Assembly (NCBI GenBank): GCA_965644295.1
Contig: CBFFRP010000073.1
Span: forward strand, 50,839-114,838
Length of the DNA stretch: 64,000 nucleotides
Direction: 5' to 3'
Origin: Paraphysomonas bandaiensis
Taxonomy: Eukaryota > Protista > Chrysophyceae
The notes under the pieces were generated by a model. The model ran no database searches, was not told the origin of the DNA, and saw only the letters and a list, made by a program, of their open reading frames with translations. Both the position numbers and the translations under genes were made by a program. This document shows, piece by piece, positions 37,540 to 55,685 of the stretch (position 1 is the first letter of the stretch; the number at the start of each line of letters is the position of its first letter).

Positions 37540-38317
37540 GCACCAAGCTCAATGTCTCAGTTGAGACCGTGGTTGTGTTACATCAGCGGCTCCAGGCTCA
37601 GATTGTCTTCTCCTCCCCACGCATGGCTGTATTTTGTATCACACCACACTGCCGACAAACACCTTGTCTTACCATGTTGTACATGCTTCCCGTTCGATAA
37701 CGTGGCTTTGCAACCATTATCTTCACTAACTCCGTCAGTTAAACTAAGTGCCTGCACCATTGCAGCGCTGTCAGTTCCTATTGGACATCTCCCTTGTAGA
37801 CGTATCTGTCTCACACACCGTTCTCTACGGTTACAACCACTCATCGCATGGCTCGTGCGGGTAGGCACTCGAAAACGGTCCACTTGTTCATTCGCTAACA
37901 CCCATGTTCCCCATCGGCCCCGCTACCTTGTAAGACAGGACCATTTCTTGACGACCGCACAAACCAACCCAGCATGGTTAGTCTGTGCGTCTATTCCCCG
38001 ATGCAAATTGCACACAGTGTATGTGTAGTCTTAAGCGTTCCAGTGTTGTAGTAGTAGACTTAGATCACTGCTTTCACTTGTCATGCTGTACGTTGCACAA
38101 CGTGTCCCCTACATACACACCTATCATATAGCGCCGGTGAGTCCTAGGACACACGACAATGGCGAAACTCGCAATCAACATCAAGAACGGAAGTGGTCGC
38201 ACCTTGGTGCTTGCGGCGACGCACAAGCAGCTTCTGTAGCGTTAAATAGTAGGATAATGGAATTTGTGCTGATTAGTTATGGGTAGAGGTCTAACTAGTA
38301 TGTCTAGCATTCAACTA
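37540..38317 (-). mobile_element. Family H (Helitron-like) mosaic element, continues at 46449-46510 after the nested insertion
   Basis: 37997-38317 plus 46449-46510 is near-identical to the reverse complement of 54334-54719; 37570-37690 matches 55565-55683. Confidence 0.75.
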
Positions 38318-39249
38318 AAGTCGAGGTAATACCAAAACCTGGTAAAGCGATTTCACCAGGTTTCATATCTAATTAAGTATGGAGTTATTATTTTACTGTA
38401 ATTTGTATCTGAGAGGTTAAAGATAAAGAAAAAGTTGCAATTATAGTTGTTATTAGCAATAATTATTGCGTTACAAGTTGGCCCTGCCACGACTTGTGTT
38501 TTGTAATATCATATTCTCATATAGCTGCATTTGCCTCTCTTGAGATTGCAAACGCTCCAACCGAATAGCCTGGTTTTGGATACAATGCATACGCATAAAG
38601 CTATCTTCACCACTACTACTTACACTAGTAGTATTAGTACCTATGCTCTGAGACGACGCGGCTACAGCCGTTGGGGGCGCAGTACTAAAGCAACCTTAAG
38701 ACAAACGTGGGAAAAATGTTCAAATTTGGGACTTTTGATTGAAAGCTATGTTCTACGAGTAATTTTAATGTTAATTTGTCCCGAAATGTTATTCGAGTAG
38801 TTTGCAAGAAGTTTTCATAATTATAGTATGATATTTTAATAAAATATATGATATATTCATTATTTATAAGTAGTTACCGTGGGGCTAGTACGTTTTTCCA
38901 TAACTTTTGGGGCTGAACCTACTGCACTCTAGTATCTTTTCATTCATAAGGTACAATTTCTACTTCATAACTAGCACAAGTTCTATTGACTCTTTTCATG
39001 ACGTTAGCAGCTTCCCTTCCATTCCTTCAGCTACTTCACCGACTATGAACTCTATATCATATTTTCCATTCTTGTATTCTAATACGGCACCATTAATATT
39101 GTGAATTTTCTGATCTTTTCACCTATATTTCATAGAAGTGTTCGTGCCCACTACTATTCTCAGCACTACTATCGCCACAAGTTTCAATGCATTGCGTCGA
39201 TGACCTCATTTCCAATATCTTCACTCAACTATATCTTCATTTCCACTTT

Positions 39250-41620
39250 CTTCACTCATATACTGCTTTCACTTGAACAGAGCTCTTCCTCACTGGGGAG
39301 CTGCTAACTTGAAATCGTGAACGCTTCTTCTTATGGACAACCTTTCGACGAACAGTTCTACGCAACTCAAAATCACTGCCATCATAGGACACATCAGACA
39401 ATACAACGGTCAAGATTGAGTGGGTCACGACGCCCTCCAGGAGTAGCCACATTCATCAACAATGACGCCATCGCCCTGTCCCCCAATGCAATCAACAAGT
39501 GCATTTATCTCCCCATGTGCAATCCAATCTTCCGCTACCACATTCTCAAATGAATTCATGGGGTCATCGCCTGGATGCAACCTGACCACTCCGCTTATTC
39601 CTCCAGTAAATCCTCTTGCCTCCACCTCGGATATTAATCATATGTCCTTGACGAACGAATCGGGATGCCATATCCGTTGGGGACTCTCTCCCCACAACTC
39701 AAAATTCCGACCTCATGTGCAGCCAGCTTTTTCCTTCTCTTCCACTTCCTGAAGACCTGAACTTATACCGGGAGAGCGTTCCTATTCACAACTTCTCCGT
39801 TAATCATACAGCGCTCAACACGCACACTGAGATCAACGTGGTTATCTGAACGCTTAAAGCCCCATCAACTCCATCGAACACAGCCCGTGGCGCACATCCA
39901 CTGAAGATCGCTGGCTATACAGCGATCACTCAAGGGAACAACCTCCACAGGTTCCGTAGTTTCCCTTGAGAAAAGGATATCACCAAGTAAGTGGTATTCG
40001 AAGACGGTGGTGATATATTCTGCTACCGTATCTACACGTAGAATTCTGACCTTGCCCACTCGTTCCCCATTCGCGGAGAGCAGATAGATGTTTCCTTGGA
40101 ACTCTATTCGGCATTCGTATAACACCGCATCTATCACTCCTCTGGACCCTTCATTAAAAGAGTAAGGGTCAGGAGGTTGAGAGGGCTATGACGATAGAAT
40201 TACCATCCATCCATGTAAATACCTTGGTCGATATCCTTCATCGGGTTATCGGAAACATCCGCGGACTTGGCATATCGTTTGGAAGAGTCGGAAATGATCT
40301 GACCTACGTCGTCTGCGCAGTATGCGCGGTAAAACACCCGTACGCCTTTGCTTAAGCACACTGTAGCAAGGGCCAGCGCCTCAAACGTCCACTGAAGTAG
40401 CGCCTTCTCACCTATGATACGGGCATTTACGAGAGGGTCGACGTGATGTCGAGGGCTTCTTATAATCTGGAATGGCAAAGAGATCTTAAAGCACACGTGG
40501 GGTCTTATTCGTCGACAAAGCTTTCTCAATCTTAGCTTTATACTGTTGAGGGGTATATATACATACTTCGATTGAATTGCTTTTCACAACAACATTCCAA
40601 ACTTGGGAGTCGATATCCTCCTGAGTGTGTCCTACCATCAGCCTGGTAAGAACAAATCGCTTGCACAGACGCCTTCTTGCTGCAATCAACTCGTACAAGG
40701 CAAACCAATCGAATAGTCTTCTCCATGGTGTCCAAGAGACAATACATCGCAACATTTGCACAATTATTAATTGTATGAAATGTACGATACAGTATATAAT
40801 ACTACCACGGTTGCGGTTAAAACGCCTTGAAGGTGTGCTGGGGCATGCTTTCCATGGTGAAAAGCATGCATCATCGTGATTTATTTTCCCTATCCATATG
40901 TGACTTATGGGTTCGTCGAAAAGTGTACTAAGAGCAGCATAGCATTGACATTTTCCTATCACTCCCTCATTACTACGTAGAGGATGCAGTGAACCCAGAG
41001 ACGCAAATTGCTCCACAGATATTGCTCCACGTCCACATTAGTCAGATCGTTAATATACTTGTGGTGGACCTCCTTAATATATCGAGGTTCGAGATGAATA
41101 TCCCCACCAAGATGGGGTTGATAGTCACCCACTACGTGAAAGTGATCAATCATCCAACCATACGCAGATAATACCACGGGGCTTTTGGGGAGAGCTCTGT
41201 TGCTGCTACCTCTTTCTGCGTTAAATGAATTCCAAATGACTTTTTGCAAGACCAGCGAGAAGAGCAGAAGCAACTTGGCTACAGGCATTCAACTTCGCCT
41301 CGGTGTTAGTTGAGCCACCCTTCATATCATTGATAACACTGCCAACATGAGAAAAGGACACAGCGTACACATTGCAGAAACAGTCCTGTAAATAAAGAAC
41401 CTAAACTTAACTCATAATTCGTCCATAACTATATACCTTGCAGACACCACTGATTCTTGTAATCATTCTGTCCACTACCTTCCAATCAATCCATGCAATT
41501 TGAAAGAAGACTACGAATGAGTTTTTTCTCCCGACGATTCATAAAATCACTCTCGTGGATACAGTCGAAAGCCAAATCCACAGCTGCATCATATTCCACG
41601 CAAAAGGCATATATCATTGC
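39250..41620 (-). pseudogene. Decayed transposase of the inner element (GHTxEDID type; Sola-like / DUF7869-like, tentative)
   Basis: ELIAARRRLCKRFVLTRLMVGHTQEDIDSQ...IYTPQQY; LQWTFEA...KGVRVFYRAY; several frameshifted fragments. Confidence 0.65.
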
Positions 41621-41757
41621 AACATGTCGGCCTCACAATCACATCAGGATACTTCTTCAGTTCAAAACGATCTACGATACACAATAATTTTAGTTCCATC
41701 GAATGAGGCAAAATACATATATACTGTATGTTCAATTTACTACATATATAATATACA

Positions 41758-43117
41758 TATCAAACAAACTGATGTGGACATATATGCCATGTGGGGCGCG
41801 GGTCCAGGGCGCTCAACCTTTCTATGACCACCGAATTTGCTCTAGAAAGGAGCTACCCTAGCGAGCGGCATCAGCCACAGCATTGCTGCTATGTAAGTCA
41901 TAGTGGGAGCTCTCATGGGCCAGGGAATTACACCCCGTTAAACTCTATATACCATAAGGTCTACAGAGTAAGCCCTCGCAGTGGACTCGCACCACTTTAA
42001 GCACATGCCGAGCAAGGCCGCGCAAACTAGTACCCCTTCTCTACGTCTACCCCAGCATATACGAGCATACAGTATACTACTACATGATACATGATGTATG
42101 TATATATCAAACAAACTGATGTGGACATATATGCCATGTGGGGCGCGGGTCCAGGGCGCTCAACCTTTCTATGACCACCGAATTTGCTCTAGAAAGGAGC
42201 TACCCTAGCGAGCGGCATCAGCCACAGCATTGCTGCTATGTAAGTCATAGTGGGAGCTCTCATGGGCCAGGGAATTACACCCCGTTAAACTCTATATACC
42301 ATAAGGTCTACAGAGTAAGCCCTCGCAGTGGACTCGCACCACTTTAAGCACATGCCGAGCAAGGCCGCGCAAACTAGTACCCCTTCTCTACGTCTACCCC
42401 AGCATATACGAGCATACAGTATACTACTACATGATACATGATGTATGTATATATCAAACAAACTGATGTAGACATATATGCCATGTGGGGCGCGGGTCCA
42501 GGGCGCTCAACCTTTCTATGACCACCGAATTTGCTCTAGAAAGGAGCTACCCTAGCGAGCGGCATCAGCCACAGCATTGCTGCTATGTAAGTCATAGTGG
42601 GAGCTCTCATGGGCCAGGGAATTACACCCCGTTAAACTCTATATACCATAAGGTCTACAGAGTAAGCCCTCGCAGTGGACTCGCACCACTTTAAGCACAT
42701 GCCGAGCAAGGCCGCGCAAACTAGTACCCCTTCTCTACGTCTACCCCAGCATATACGAGCATACAGTATACTACTACATGATACATGATGTATGTATATA
42801 TCAAACAAACTGATGTGGACATATATGCCATGTGGGGCGCGGGTCCAGGGCGCTCAACCTTTCTATGACCACCGAATTTGCTCTAGAAAGGAGCTACCCT
42901 AGCGAGCGGCATCAGCCACAGCATTGCTGCTATGTAAGTCATAGTGGGAGCTCTCATGGGCCAGGGAATTACACCCCGTTAAACTCTATATACCATAAGG
43001 TCTACAGAGTAAGCCCTCGCAGTGGACTCGCACCACTTTAAGCACATGCCGAGCAAGGCCGCGCAAACTAGTACCCCTTCTCTACGTCTACCCCAGCATA
43101 TACGAGCATACAGTATG
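41758..43117 (-). repeat. Tandem array of about 3.9 near-identical 347-bp units; candidate structured ncRNA on the minus strand
   Basis: Period 347 (identical ORF calls at 41791/42138/42485/42832); one substitution noticed (about 42469); multiple hairpins. Confidence 0.95.
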
Positions 43118-44744
43118 CTATATATATACATGTATATCTAACTCTCAGTCATGAAGACACTCAGCTACACTATAAGCATACAGCACACCAGCGGCACCAC
43201 TAACCTGTGAGTGACACATACTTGGAACGTGAAGAAGTCATAACCAAACTCTACCTCATCATAAGGGACAATCAGATTGTGTGTGTGTGTGTGCTGACAG
43301 CTCTGCGGAATATATTTGAATTATCTCACTGCGAGTAACACACACACACCTACATATATACATACATACATCCACATGTCCAAGTCTCTATTTTTGATGT
43401 GTGCATGTTTTCATACGAAAACCGTGACCCTCATCATCACCACGCATGACCCTCATCACCGTACTGTATACGTATATACGCAAAATACCATATCTAATTT
43501 TGAATGTAGACATCATGGTCACACATACATGCATATACATATATAGACATGTAGACATGGACATAATGATGCGCATTAAGACGCACTGTGCCAGAGTATG
43601 ATATAGTAATATCATGACTGATTTAGATGCATTGCAAGGTATGGTTCAGGATACAACAGGGGACCTGAGTGAGAGCGATACGGGTGACGTCGCCATCACT
43701 GCACCCTGTACAGATGTATGCACCCCATCTCCATCTGCCACATGTGCGGGTTGAGGTGGTTGTGACAAGGAGTTCCCGATTGATGAGAAGGGCTCCGATT
43801 TTTATCATGGAGTGCTATGTGGCGCATGTAATTGGATGTAATCATATGTACCCCACATCACACATATATACAGAGAGTGTACATGTTGTCACGTTCGTAG
43901 TATTCATCGAAGGTTCTAATCTTGGAGATGCTCTTCAGTCTGACCTCACTACTGGTGATGGCACCCCTCTTTCACAACTTCCCTCTAGTCCCGTGACGTA
44001 TTACTACGTAGAAGATTACTGTTTTGATGATGATGACCCTGGTCATACTCTACCAAAGGTGACGACCCTCTTACTCCTCTGTCTCAGCCCGTTGCATATG
44101 AGGAGGTGAGTTCCCGTAGTATATATTAGTGATTCAATTTACTCCTTCTTACTATTTTCGGACAGTTGCTCCCCGGTTAATGGTTCTTTGAGGAGTAAGT
44201 TATTACATGTATACCCCTCTTTCACTTATGTACCATGCTGGTAGTATTAATACCGGTCAGTGTAGTTGTTGTGCTTGGTGTAAGTTTTTAAATGTTTTTT
44301 ACTTATATTGTCGCTGTATTACTTAGTTAATATTGTACATGTTTTATATTGATGAGGCTATTTCGATACTTACAGACGCAGTAATAACAATTTCGTTGTG
44401 CTGAGCACTGTCCTGAAATCATTCTTGGAATATTGTTATTTTTTTAATAAAATAACAATAAGAATAGTATTGTATAGCTACTATAATATTATTACACAGT
44501 TTTAATAATATTAGATTAATGAAAACGATAAGTATAGGATAGGGTACAAAGGGGTCCAAAACGTGGGAAAAAATTTTTCCCACGTTTGTCTTAAGGTTGC
44601 TTCTAGTAGGTGGAGGATCATAAGCAGGTGGAGGATCATCATTTTTTCTCATTAAAAGATCACGAAGTTCTGCTAGTCCGGACATCATTTCCTGACGAAG
44701 TTCAGCAACAGCGGGAGGTATCAGATCTGCTTTCTGCTGAGATT

Positions 44745-45418
44745 CGACGACCCCGTCACCATCTTCATGAACAGTACTACTGTCCCTGCTCGTGCGCTTT
44801 CGTGGTACCTCTTCCTCCGAGTCGTCGTTGGATATGTCGCCACGAATTTCGACCACATTCTTCTTCCCTTTGTACTTCTCCTACACCATTATACTACACA
44901 GTTAGTACAGTGTATAGTAACAACGCACAACAATAATCAGAACAATACCGCATATATACGTACGACGACCCCGTCACCTTCTTCATGAACAGTACTACTT
45001 ACCCTGCTCGTGCGCTTTCGTGGTACCTCCGAGTCGTCGTTGGATATGTCGCCACGAATTTCGACGACATTCTTCTTCCCATTGCACTACACACAGCAGT
45101 TAGTACATGTATAGTAACAGCACACAACAATAATCAGAACAATACCGCATATATACGTACGACGACCCCGTCACCTTCTTCATGAACAGTACTACTTACC
45201 CTGCTCGTGCGCTTTCGTGGTACCTCCGAGTCGTCGTTGGATATGTCGCCACGAATTTCGACGACATTCTTCTTCCCATTGCACTACACACAGCAGTTAG
45301 TACATGTATAGTAACAGCACACAACAATAATCAGAACAATACCGCATATATACGTACGACGACCCCGTCACCTTCTTCATGAACAGTACTACTTACCCTG
45401 CTCGTGCGCTTTCGTGGT
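44745..45418 (-). repeat. Tandem 197-bp repeat (about 3.3 units) = 123-nt exon + 74-nt intron
   Basis: Period 197 (44985/45182/45379; first unit 218); minus strand GTACGT...TACTAAC...TGTAG introns at 45160-45087 and 45357-45284. Confidence 0.85.
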
Positions 45419-45437
45419 GGAACAGGTGTATCAGAAA

Positions 45438-46072
45438 TGCATGTTGAAGCACGTGAACGGGGAACAAGAAGTCTTTGTGGCCGTCCAGGTATAAGGACGG
45501 TTAGAGCACAACCCACTGTTCAATACAGCGGGCACAACTCAGCTGCAATTAAGCGCATCCCTCCACGATTAGTTATTCCAGAGTCAGATGGATCTTTACC
45601 TGACGAACCGAGAGGTGTGCTCAATGCACCGTACATTGGACGAGAAGCACGACGTGAGGTCAACAGGAAGAATGCTGCTGCTAGGAAGAGGGAGGAGCAG
45701 GAGCGTATCAATGCAACCCGTTTAACAGAAAGTGATTCTGAGGCTGAAGAACAAGTATCAGACCCAGAATCAGATTGTCATCGTTCGTCACCAACATTCG
45801 CAGTTGGTGAACTAGTTTCTAACATACACAATTTAAGAGGTATTATTTCTGAGGTAAGCAGCGACATGTATGTGTAACACATATATTTAATCAATAAATG
45901 TAAGAGATATATATACTCAGGTACATAGCGACAATACTTACGATATCAAATATAATGATGGACAGTATGACAACAACCTAGCGGCAAGTTACTTGAGGCA
46001 CATAAAAGGTTAGTATATGTAATAATATGATTATTATGTAAACGTTATAATATATTATATATTATACAGTAA
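45438..46072 (+). CDS. Transposon-borne gene fragment with C-terminal Tudor-like barrel, spliced
   Basis: FAVGELVSNIHNLRGIISE|VHSDNTYDIKYNDGQYDNNLAASYLR across a GTAAGC...CAG intron; second copy at 28730-28920. Confidence 0.5.
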
Positions 46073-46628
46073 CTTCGTCAAAGAAAAGGACTAAAAAACA
46101 GCAATGGGAAATAGTGACAGAGCCTACAACCGAATGGGTGGATCAAGGCGCTCTCTCATCTGAGAATGTTGTGACCGGAAAACGTCGACGTAGTAGTGGG
46201 GTATCGTACAAAGAATAGCTTTATATTATGCTTGAACTGTATAATATATGTGTGTAGTCGGTGACTTTTATTGCTGTAAAACTGAAGTAATATGGAAGAA
46301 ATTAGTAAAAAATATTATAAATAATACTTTTCACACTGTTATTAACTTCATAGTTACTTATTGTGCATAGTTATACCCTTTTCCGACCATCACCAAAAAT
46401 TTCACCAGGTTTTACATCAAAACCCAGGTTTTGGTATTACCTCGACTTCTAGCCACTATATTGGTACAGGTTTTTAACGCCTATTGCTAAATAAAAAGAC
46501 TTTCAATATACCGTTCAGAATGTAAGTTACTTATACGCAGATATTAATCACAGTCCTTAAAGTTTTTTAAGTTCGAATCCTAATATGTCCTTATACAAAA
46601 TAGTAAATAATTGCCAATTAATTACAAC

Positions 46629-54333: not shown

Positions 54334-55685
54334 ATATATATTGAAAGTCTTTTTATTTAGCAATAGGCGTTAAAAACCTGTACCAATATAGTGACTAGTT
54401 GAATGCTAGACATACTAGTTAGACCTCTACCCATAACTAATCAGCACAAATTCCATTATCCTACTATTTAACGCTACAGAAGCTGCTTGTGCGTCGCCGC
54501 AAGCACCAAGGTGCGACCACTTCCGTTCTTGATGTTGATTGCGAGTTGCGCCATTGTCGTGTGTCCTAGGACTCACCGGCGCTATATGATAGGTGTGTAT
54601 GTAGGGGACACGTTGTGCAACGTACAGCATGACAAGTGAAAGCAGTGATCTAAGTCTACTACTACAACACTGGAACGCTTAAGACTACACATACACTGTG
54701 TGCAATTTGCATCGGGGACTGCCTTTTATGTACCTCACGGCAACCAGGGGAAACAGTACTATACCCTGCTGAGATTGGCGATCTCAGTGGTGGTCTTCCT
54801 TTAGGCATTGTGCCAAGTGACTCGGAGGTATGTGGACGAAGATCTTGCAAAAGGTTATGGCCTACTGTGAAGAAGCGTCAAAATAGAATCTTTTGCTGTC
54901 TTAGCCAGCGGTAGAGAGCACATGCAAGAGAGTGTATAGCTGGACAGGGGTGGGATATGAGGGTCATCCGGTGTGTCCAGCAACAGGGAGTCGAGAGGGA
55001 GTGTGATGGTGCAAAAGAGGCAACATCTGATTGAGGAGAGTGGGACTGCGCAACAGAACTAGGTCTGCCAAGGTCGGGTACTCTGATAGACCTATGCACG
55101 AGATGATCATGATGATGGTCTGGAGGAGACACTCGGACGTCCTCAGCTGCCCTTGTTAGTGTCTGTGTTGGTGCACGGGGGTACAGGCTGAGGCATAGAG
55201 TGTGTGTGGAAGGAAGATGACGGCAAGGTATCAGAGACGAAGGGAGGGGAGATGGTTTGTCTGGAGGTTCTCGAGGAGGAGGTAGAGTGTAAGGTGCGTG
55301 TGTATGACACAGTGCAGCGGTGTTATGAGTGTGTTGGACAGAGAGAGAGAGAGCCGGTGATGTGTCCAACAGTACAGGTATACAGGTACATGGACAGGTA
55401 CATGGGACGGAGTGAGCTGTGTGGTGTACTGCAGTATATTACACACAAGAAGGACGGAATTGGAGCCGGACGCTTGTGCCGCTTAGGCATTCTTCCTGGG
55501 CCAGAAGTAAGGGCCCTCCTATCGTAATAAAACAATCGTTTCATTACTCTTCCTTTCCACTGGAAGCATGTACAACATGGTAAGACAAGATATTTGTCGG
55601 CAGTGTGGTGTGATACAAAATGCAGCCATGCTTGGGGAGAAGAGGACAATCTGAGCCTGGACCCGCTGATGTAACACAACCACAA
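54334..55685 (+). mobile_element. Family H mosaic element with variable cargo
   Basis: Starts TATATATTGAAAGTC; modules shared with 37540-38317 but a different ~840-bp middle. Confidence 0.7.

Follow-up and report, generated by a model that had tools for sequence, protein, structure and literature searches.

A candidate structured RNA repeated in tandem in the first intron of a transposase gene of Paraphysomonas bandaiensis

The 64,000-nucleotide stretch of P. bandaiensis DNA analysed here (hereafter the window) contains a cut-and-paste transposon whose transposase gene carries, within its first intron, four tandem copies of a unit that we regard as a real and undescribed candidate for a structured RNA, its support from comparison being fair. 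The core, which takes up about 170 of the 347 nt of a unit, was probably shaped by selection on RNA structure in the lineage of this element. As to its function, our proposal is tentative, with rather less than an even chance of being right: while still part of the nascent transposase transcript, the RNA could act in cis as a platform for protein binding and so tune elongation or splicing.

Transposon, intron and tandem array

The transposon spans 5.9 kb (38688..44602), has terminal inverted repeats (TIRs) of about 33 bp starting with AAGCAACC, and is flanked by a 3-bp target duplication, CTA, at 38685-38687 and 44603-44605; across eight or more insertions the 3-bp duplication is variable. As the initial annotation had it, the array lies inside a DNA transposon, upstream of and co-oriented with a broken, minus-strand transposase, which is of the DUF7869 type. 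Several internally deleted copies that are devoid of the array are 97-100% identical, so the family has moved recently and the array is dispensable in DNA.

Public RNA contigs define the structure of the transposase gene, all features of which are on the minus strand. In exon 1 the coding sequence (43205..43241) begins with an ATG at 43241, 37 nt before the donor site, and consists of 12 codons and one nucleotide; its phase 1 fits the frame of exon 2, a match obtained by phase arithmetic, with the spliced model examined exon by exon. Intron 1 (41672..43204; 1533 nt, GT..AG) contains the array and about 100 nt between each splice site and the nearest unit. Since RNA contigs join position 41671 to 43205 (run X15), the whole array lies within one spliced intron. 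Exon 2 (41436..41671) has a Cys-rich start and contains stops, and is followed by a second intron of 51 nt (41385..41435). The remainder of the transposase (38860..41384) has several stops and frame shifts; transcript contigs carry these breaks without gaps, so the gene is truly dead, and hidden introns or editing are ruled out as their explanation. Transcription is also seen within the intron: one RNA contig (42065-42441) crosses a unit junction, as pre-mRNA would, and a 209-nt contig from a random-primed metatranscriptome is confined to a unit (41829-42036). Contigs of this kind cannot reveal the ends, strand or level of an RNA.

Tandem Repeats Finder reports a 347-bp period, 4.0 copies and 99% matches at 41757-43132 (minus strand). 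The last unit is about 12 nt short, and its ragged end excepted, the units differ by two substitutions only, in line with the four near-identical units originally described; the spacers are TA-rich and microsatellite-like. In the genome, the unit is present only within two transposon copies, that of the window and a second insertion of the 5.9-kb element, on contig C336, which is 99.4% identical. Because this insertion has different flanks and also four units, the array is not a local assembly error, and the array stretch is moreover present in 20 public runs; the suspicion that a single unit had been multiplied by an assembly artefact can thus be dismissed. The contrast between an invariant unit and a decayed transposase, taken initially as a sign of selection, does not hold. 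When the two full elements are compared, 2 of 1376 nt differ in the array and 7 of 2987 in the broken part of the transposase; the near-identity among units is therefore the product of recent duplication, not of selection.

A divergent second gene (43556..44600, plus strand), with a 60-nt intron at 44104-44163, is also transcribed. In a related element the Cys-rich start of a Myb-like protein of 703 aa has its match at 43716-43829 of the window; the match covers this start of the protein, not its Myb domain. In relatives the second gene is Myb-like, and two layouts occur in the transposon group, with the Myb-like gene either downstream and convergent or upstream and divergent; in a comparison of L047 and L055 with the window and C373, a relative whose transposase frame is open over a long stretch, the layout tracks the transposase tree. 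The window's element has TIRs and a transposase motif that we take to be Sola-like, and it shares with PIF/Harbinger a 3-bp duplication and, in relatives, a Myb-like second gene. However, Sola elements make 4-bp duplications, and PIF/Harbinger elements make TAA/TTA duplications and use another transposase family (PMC10741241). The 3-bp, variable duplications argue against the former, and this variability together with a DUF7869 transposase against the latter. We found no description of DUF7869 in a literature search of incomplete coverage, and the transposon group, with its DUF7869 transposase, Myb-like second gene and variable 3-bp duplication, fits none of the listed superfamilies cleanly.

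An outer TIR element (38318-46448), both ends of which begin with AAGTCGAGGTAATACC, encloses the transposon and includes a 197-bp tandem repeat at 44899-45418. A perfect inverted pair of 323 nt (37995-38317 and 54396-54718), 16 kb apart, is part of another dispersed repeat. Elsewhere, two 5S rRNA genes (L049, 6254-6856) directly adjoin one end of a related transposon.

Predicted fold and homology with a sister lineage

The core is predicted to fold as a four-way junction (41807..41975 in unit 1, minus strand, repeated at +347, +694 and +1041). It comprises P1 (41975-72 with 41810-07), a hairpin with a UUAU loop (41969-42), a T-loop hairpin (41937-21) and a long arm, P4 (41910-896 with 41829-11). 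This arm has two bulged U residues at 41816-15 and ends in a UAGCU loop at 41855-51. The fold based on homology lies within 2.8 kcal/mol of the minimum of the window unit, and the G-U pairs of the unit are strand-specific. Against shuffled sequences the minus strand does exceed the plus strand, for the whole unit (z -1.8 to -2.1 against -1.5 to -1.8) and for the core (41800-41980; z -3.0 against -2.0), but the excess is modest, and the 5' third of the unit folds on a par with shuffles.

The hairpins proposed in the initial annotation are all found in the unit where it had placed them, but several of its readings need revision. The supposed GNRA hairpin at 41936-41923 is better taken as a T-loop of 7 nt on a stem of 5 bp. 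The other T-loop hairpin (41996-41980) is present but competes with a long-range helix that is predicted to be about 12 kcal/mol more stable, and the helix region 42023-42001 folds no better than shuffles (z +1.0). The suggested pseudoknot is not supported: CUAUGACU/GGUCAUAG is a nested helix, and it and CCUUUCUA/UAGAAAGG exclude each other. The hairpin with the GCAA loop is present in the window unit but absent from the sister unit described below; this hairpin and the first T-loop hairpin are lineage-specific.

Another subfamily, with three copies in the genome, has 2-3 tandem units of 243-248 nt at the same intron position, and one metagenome contig carries a single unit of this sister type. 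In the transposase tree this subfamily and the window's lineage group as sisters (95/95). Between window and sister units BLAST sees no likeness, and a local alignment reaches only p about 0.016. Nevertheless, a covariance model (R1) for which the window unit, with the minimum-energy folds of its domains, was the sole source ranks three sister units at the top, at full length and on the sense strand, with E values of 0.03-0.18 when 86 kb are searched and of 0.003-0.006 for 10 kb. Both types of unit share P1, the UUAU hairpin, a 5-bp arm with a 7-nt T-loop, a long bulged arm and the UAGCU tip; arm P4a-c is missing from the minimum-energy fold of the sister unit. Among 38 pairs, 15 are the same in the two units, four are changed on one side, 15 are changed on both sides and four are broken, a count anchored by hand on shared loop words, and hence biased, and drawn from two independent sequences. 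The broader idea of an undescribed, transposon-borne structured RNA amplified in tandem is favoured by the homology, by these double changes and by the transcription of the intron, with the qualification that only about half of the unit, some 170 of 347 nt, is conserved.

More distant searches returned little. R1 and a further model, R3, gave nothing significant on about 30 distant loci, and pattern scans of viral and prokaryotic contigs were blank. A single full-length R1 match (E 0.0095) lies at 52889-53055 of contig C111 (minus strand), with no transposase nearby; R3 did not repeat it among the 150 of 2157 candidates scored.

Introns of relatives and comparison with known RNAs

Six metagenome elements, whose transposases are about 60% identical, agree in the short exon 1 and in the intron. 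A single folded RNA lies in each of these introns, closed by a long stem that is unrelated in sequence (L047 2850-3014; L136 1910-2090; L055 767-932; L138 1236-1383; L141 123-335; L054 1466-1677). Folding z scores are -3.4 to -8.6 in five of the six, the exception being L138. The RNAs of this second clade are homologous to one another: a model from L047 (R2) finds L136, L055 and L138, and double changes affect 22 of 48 pairs, above all shuffles and slid controls, in an alignment that was fitted to the structure. Their predicted fold is a three-way junction, in which loops UGGC and GCC could kiss; as this contact is invariant, it is unproven. The family is not in Rfam. R2 has no match in the window or sister units, so the RNA of the window's intron differs from that of the second clade, which is the better supported of the two. 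Still other architectures occupy the intron in L057, L061 and L147, and upstream of the transposase of C373 there is no folded RNA.

Tandem repetition recurs among distant members. In intron 1 of a distant DUF7869 transposase gene (L061, 4780-5390) there are about ten tandem, slightly varied hairpin units of 46-59 nt, with GAUYGA and YCUC words that resemble the bulge motif considered next. L147 has three tandem 46-nt hairpins in intron 1 (200-335); in the first, two UU bulges face each other around a GAGCUC palindrome, an arrangement that resembles the symmetric site of 7SK. At L064 (2940-3400), three to four tandem units of 140 nt, probably intronic, lie upstream of a distant transposase.

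In the arginine-sandwich motifs of the HIV TAR bulge and of 7SK SL1, a pyrimidine bulge is followed by G-C and A-U pairs (PMC6189040). A strict, structure-based definition (a two-pyrimidine bulge, then G-C and A-U) is satisfied in the predicted folds of six introns (the sister unit, L047, L136, L138, L141 and L147), with no antisense occurrences and in 0-2.5% of shuffles. L147, which was fetched after the motif idea had been noted, has four copies, two of which face each other symmetrically, as do ASM3 and ASM4 of 7SK. For the window unit, the domain fold and the homology fold both contain the motif, but only 1% of the full-unit ensemble does. It is absent from the predicted folds of L054, L055, L057 and L061, and a loose definition yields no enrichment. 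The RNAs would resemble TAR and 7SK in the predicted bulge followed by G-C and A-U and, like TAR, would be promoter-proximal in the nascent transcript of a mobile element. They differ in being intronic, in lying within larger junctions and in having no TAR apical loop; moreover, no Tat- or HEXIM-like partner was found, and the candidate site is weakly predicted in the window unit. A conserved arginine-rich peptide was not found in the transposases of the elements; some second genes carry basic patches, which may be nuclear signals.

The initial annotation had been unable to assign the unit to a known family, and neither could we. Rfam has no match in the window (best E 5.4 on the unit) or in the introns of the relatives, ARAGORN is blank on the unit, and no C/D or H/ACA boxes were seen. 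These results give no support to a snoRNA and, together with the confinement of the unit to two transposon copies, none to a tRNA or tmRNA, which would show a cloverleaf and an anticodon arm, or to a tRNA-derived SINE, which would be dispersed and carry A and B boxes. mascRNA is a tRNA-like element, and the 5-bp arm with a 7-nt T-loop beside a junction recalls it; the loops of the unit, however, are UGUAAUU or UGAAACU, and there is no D-loop partner and no acceptor end. A guide or bridge RNA was rejected because complementarity to the TIRs or splice sites lies within shuffles (one of 23 tests gave p 0.005). Intronic TPP riboswitches are known in fungi and algae, and the window RNA is likewise structured, lies in a 5' intron and could influence splicing; it differs in having no Rfam match, no TPP core and no pairing to the splice sites, and TPP, FMN and cobalamin riboswitches match neither by eye nor in Rfam. 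If it works at all, the unit would work like TAR or an intronic riboswitch, while belonging to neither. Retroelements and bacterial insertion sequences are well-known carriers of structured regulatory RNAs; for intron RNAs of eukaryotic cut-and-paste transposons, our literature search, incomplete in coverage, returned no description.

Candidate function and alternatives

Under the platform proposal, the transposon lineage would keep a folded RNA in the promoter-proximal first intron of its transposase gene. Folding on the nascent transcript, this RNA would form a junction that displays protein-binding surfaces, chiefly the two-pyrimidine bulge followed by G-C and A-U, with the arginine-sandwich geometry of TAR and 7SK, and in addition the T-loop. 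A host elongation or splicing factor, or the second protein of the element, might bind there and set the amount of spliced transposase mRNA. The tandem copies, which would multiply the sites, could have arisen recently at the TA-rich spacers, by slippage or by unequal exchange; in the window's element, the transposase being dead, the copies may now be passengers. The fold in the cell, the partner and the effect of such a platform are all inferred. A more specific version, in which intron-borne TAR/7SK-type mimics, varying in scaffold and copy number, attract or sequester a host factor of elongation or splicing and so control the transposon's own expression, we consider distinctly unlikely.

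That the intron instead hosts a stable non-coding RNA that is cut out and acts in trans is rather unlikely. Such an RNA might serve the transposase as a scaffold, or act as a decoy, whether of host silencing or of a complex of the 7SK type, and the units would form a polycistronic precursor, perhaps released at the tRNA-like T-arm. The long closing stems around the RNA in every relative would suit this, as would the T-loop arm common to window and sister units and the 209-nt contig within a unit (41829-42036). Yet the contigs show neither ends, strand nor level, the one at 42065-42441 spans a unit junction in the manner of pre-mRNA, and the blank results for boxes, ARAGORN and Rfam, along with the absence of complementarity to the ends of the element, speak against it. 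It is unlikely, too, that the fold is a relic, either selected in an ancestor or a hairpin-prone sequence, with the array a neutral tandem expansion in a dead element. The transposase is indeed broken and the array no better conserved than it, the folding excess of the whole unit is weak, the RNA architecture varies between clades and C373 has none. Against this, the double changes relative to the sister unit and the strong covariation of the other clade need past selection on RNA structure; the motif recurs in a strand-specific manner; and neutral expansion accounts for the copy number, not for the origin of the RNA.

A self-cleaving ribozyme of a new class, whose cuts within the intron would limit transposase mRNA or set free RNA of unit length, is quite improbable, and known cores lend no support to the ribozyme reading of the initial annotation. 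Tandem layouts are found in retrozymes, and a multi-way junction and the possible kissing loops of the second clade would fit. The closest likeness is to twister-sister (RF02681; PMC5660989, PMC11620745), likewise a junction RNA with a 7-nt T-loop hairpin, since GCUAG and GCUCA words occur in the unit; these words, however, are on the opposite strands from the T-loop or have no flanking P1 and P2 stems, for any pairing of GCWAG and GCUYAW words at most one of the two stems forms, and RF02681 has no match in the genome. A descriptor scan of both strands of two tandem units, covering six ribozyme classes including twister-sister, returned no hammerhead, HDV-like, twister, hairpin or pistol core. 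In addition, at least part of the transcripts splice the intron normally, and few invariant unpaired bases are common to the clades. Less probable still, and largely refuted, is an IRES or other translational element, as had also been suggested, or a DNA-level transposition signal. The array does lie upstream of the main coding exons, and repeats are common near transposon ends; an IRES or 5' leader element, however, requires presence in the mature mRNA, from which the array is spliced out, and a DNA signal is at odds with the recent transposition of array-less copies and with G-U pairs and a bulge motif that are strand-specific.

We return, then, to the platform on the nascent transcript. Were its TAR/7SK-type version true, a cut-and-paste transposon would be controlling its own expression with an RNA device of which retroviruses and 7SK have so far supplied the known examples. 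One orthologous intron position holds two new families of covarying RNA in which a small bulge motif recurs, and these offer compact, testable substrates for how marine-protist transposons may tune their own transcription or splicing.
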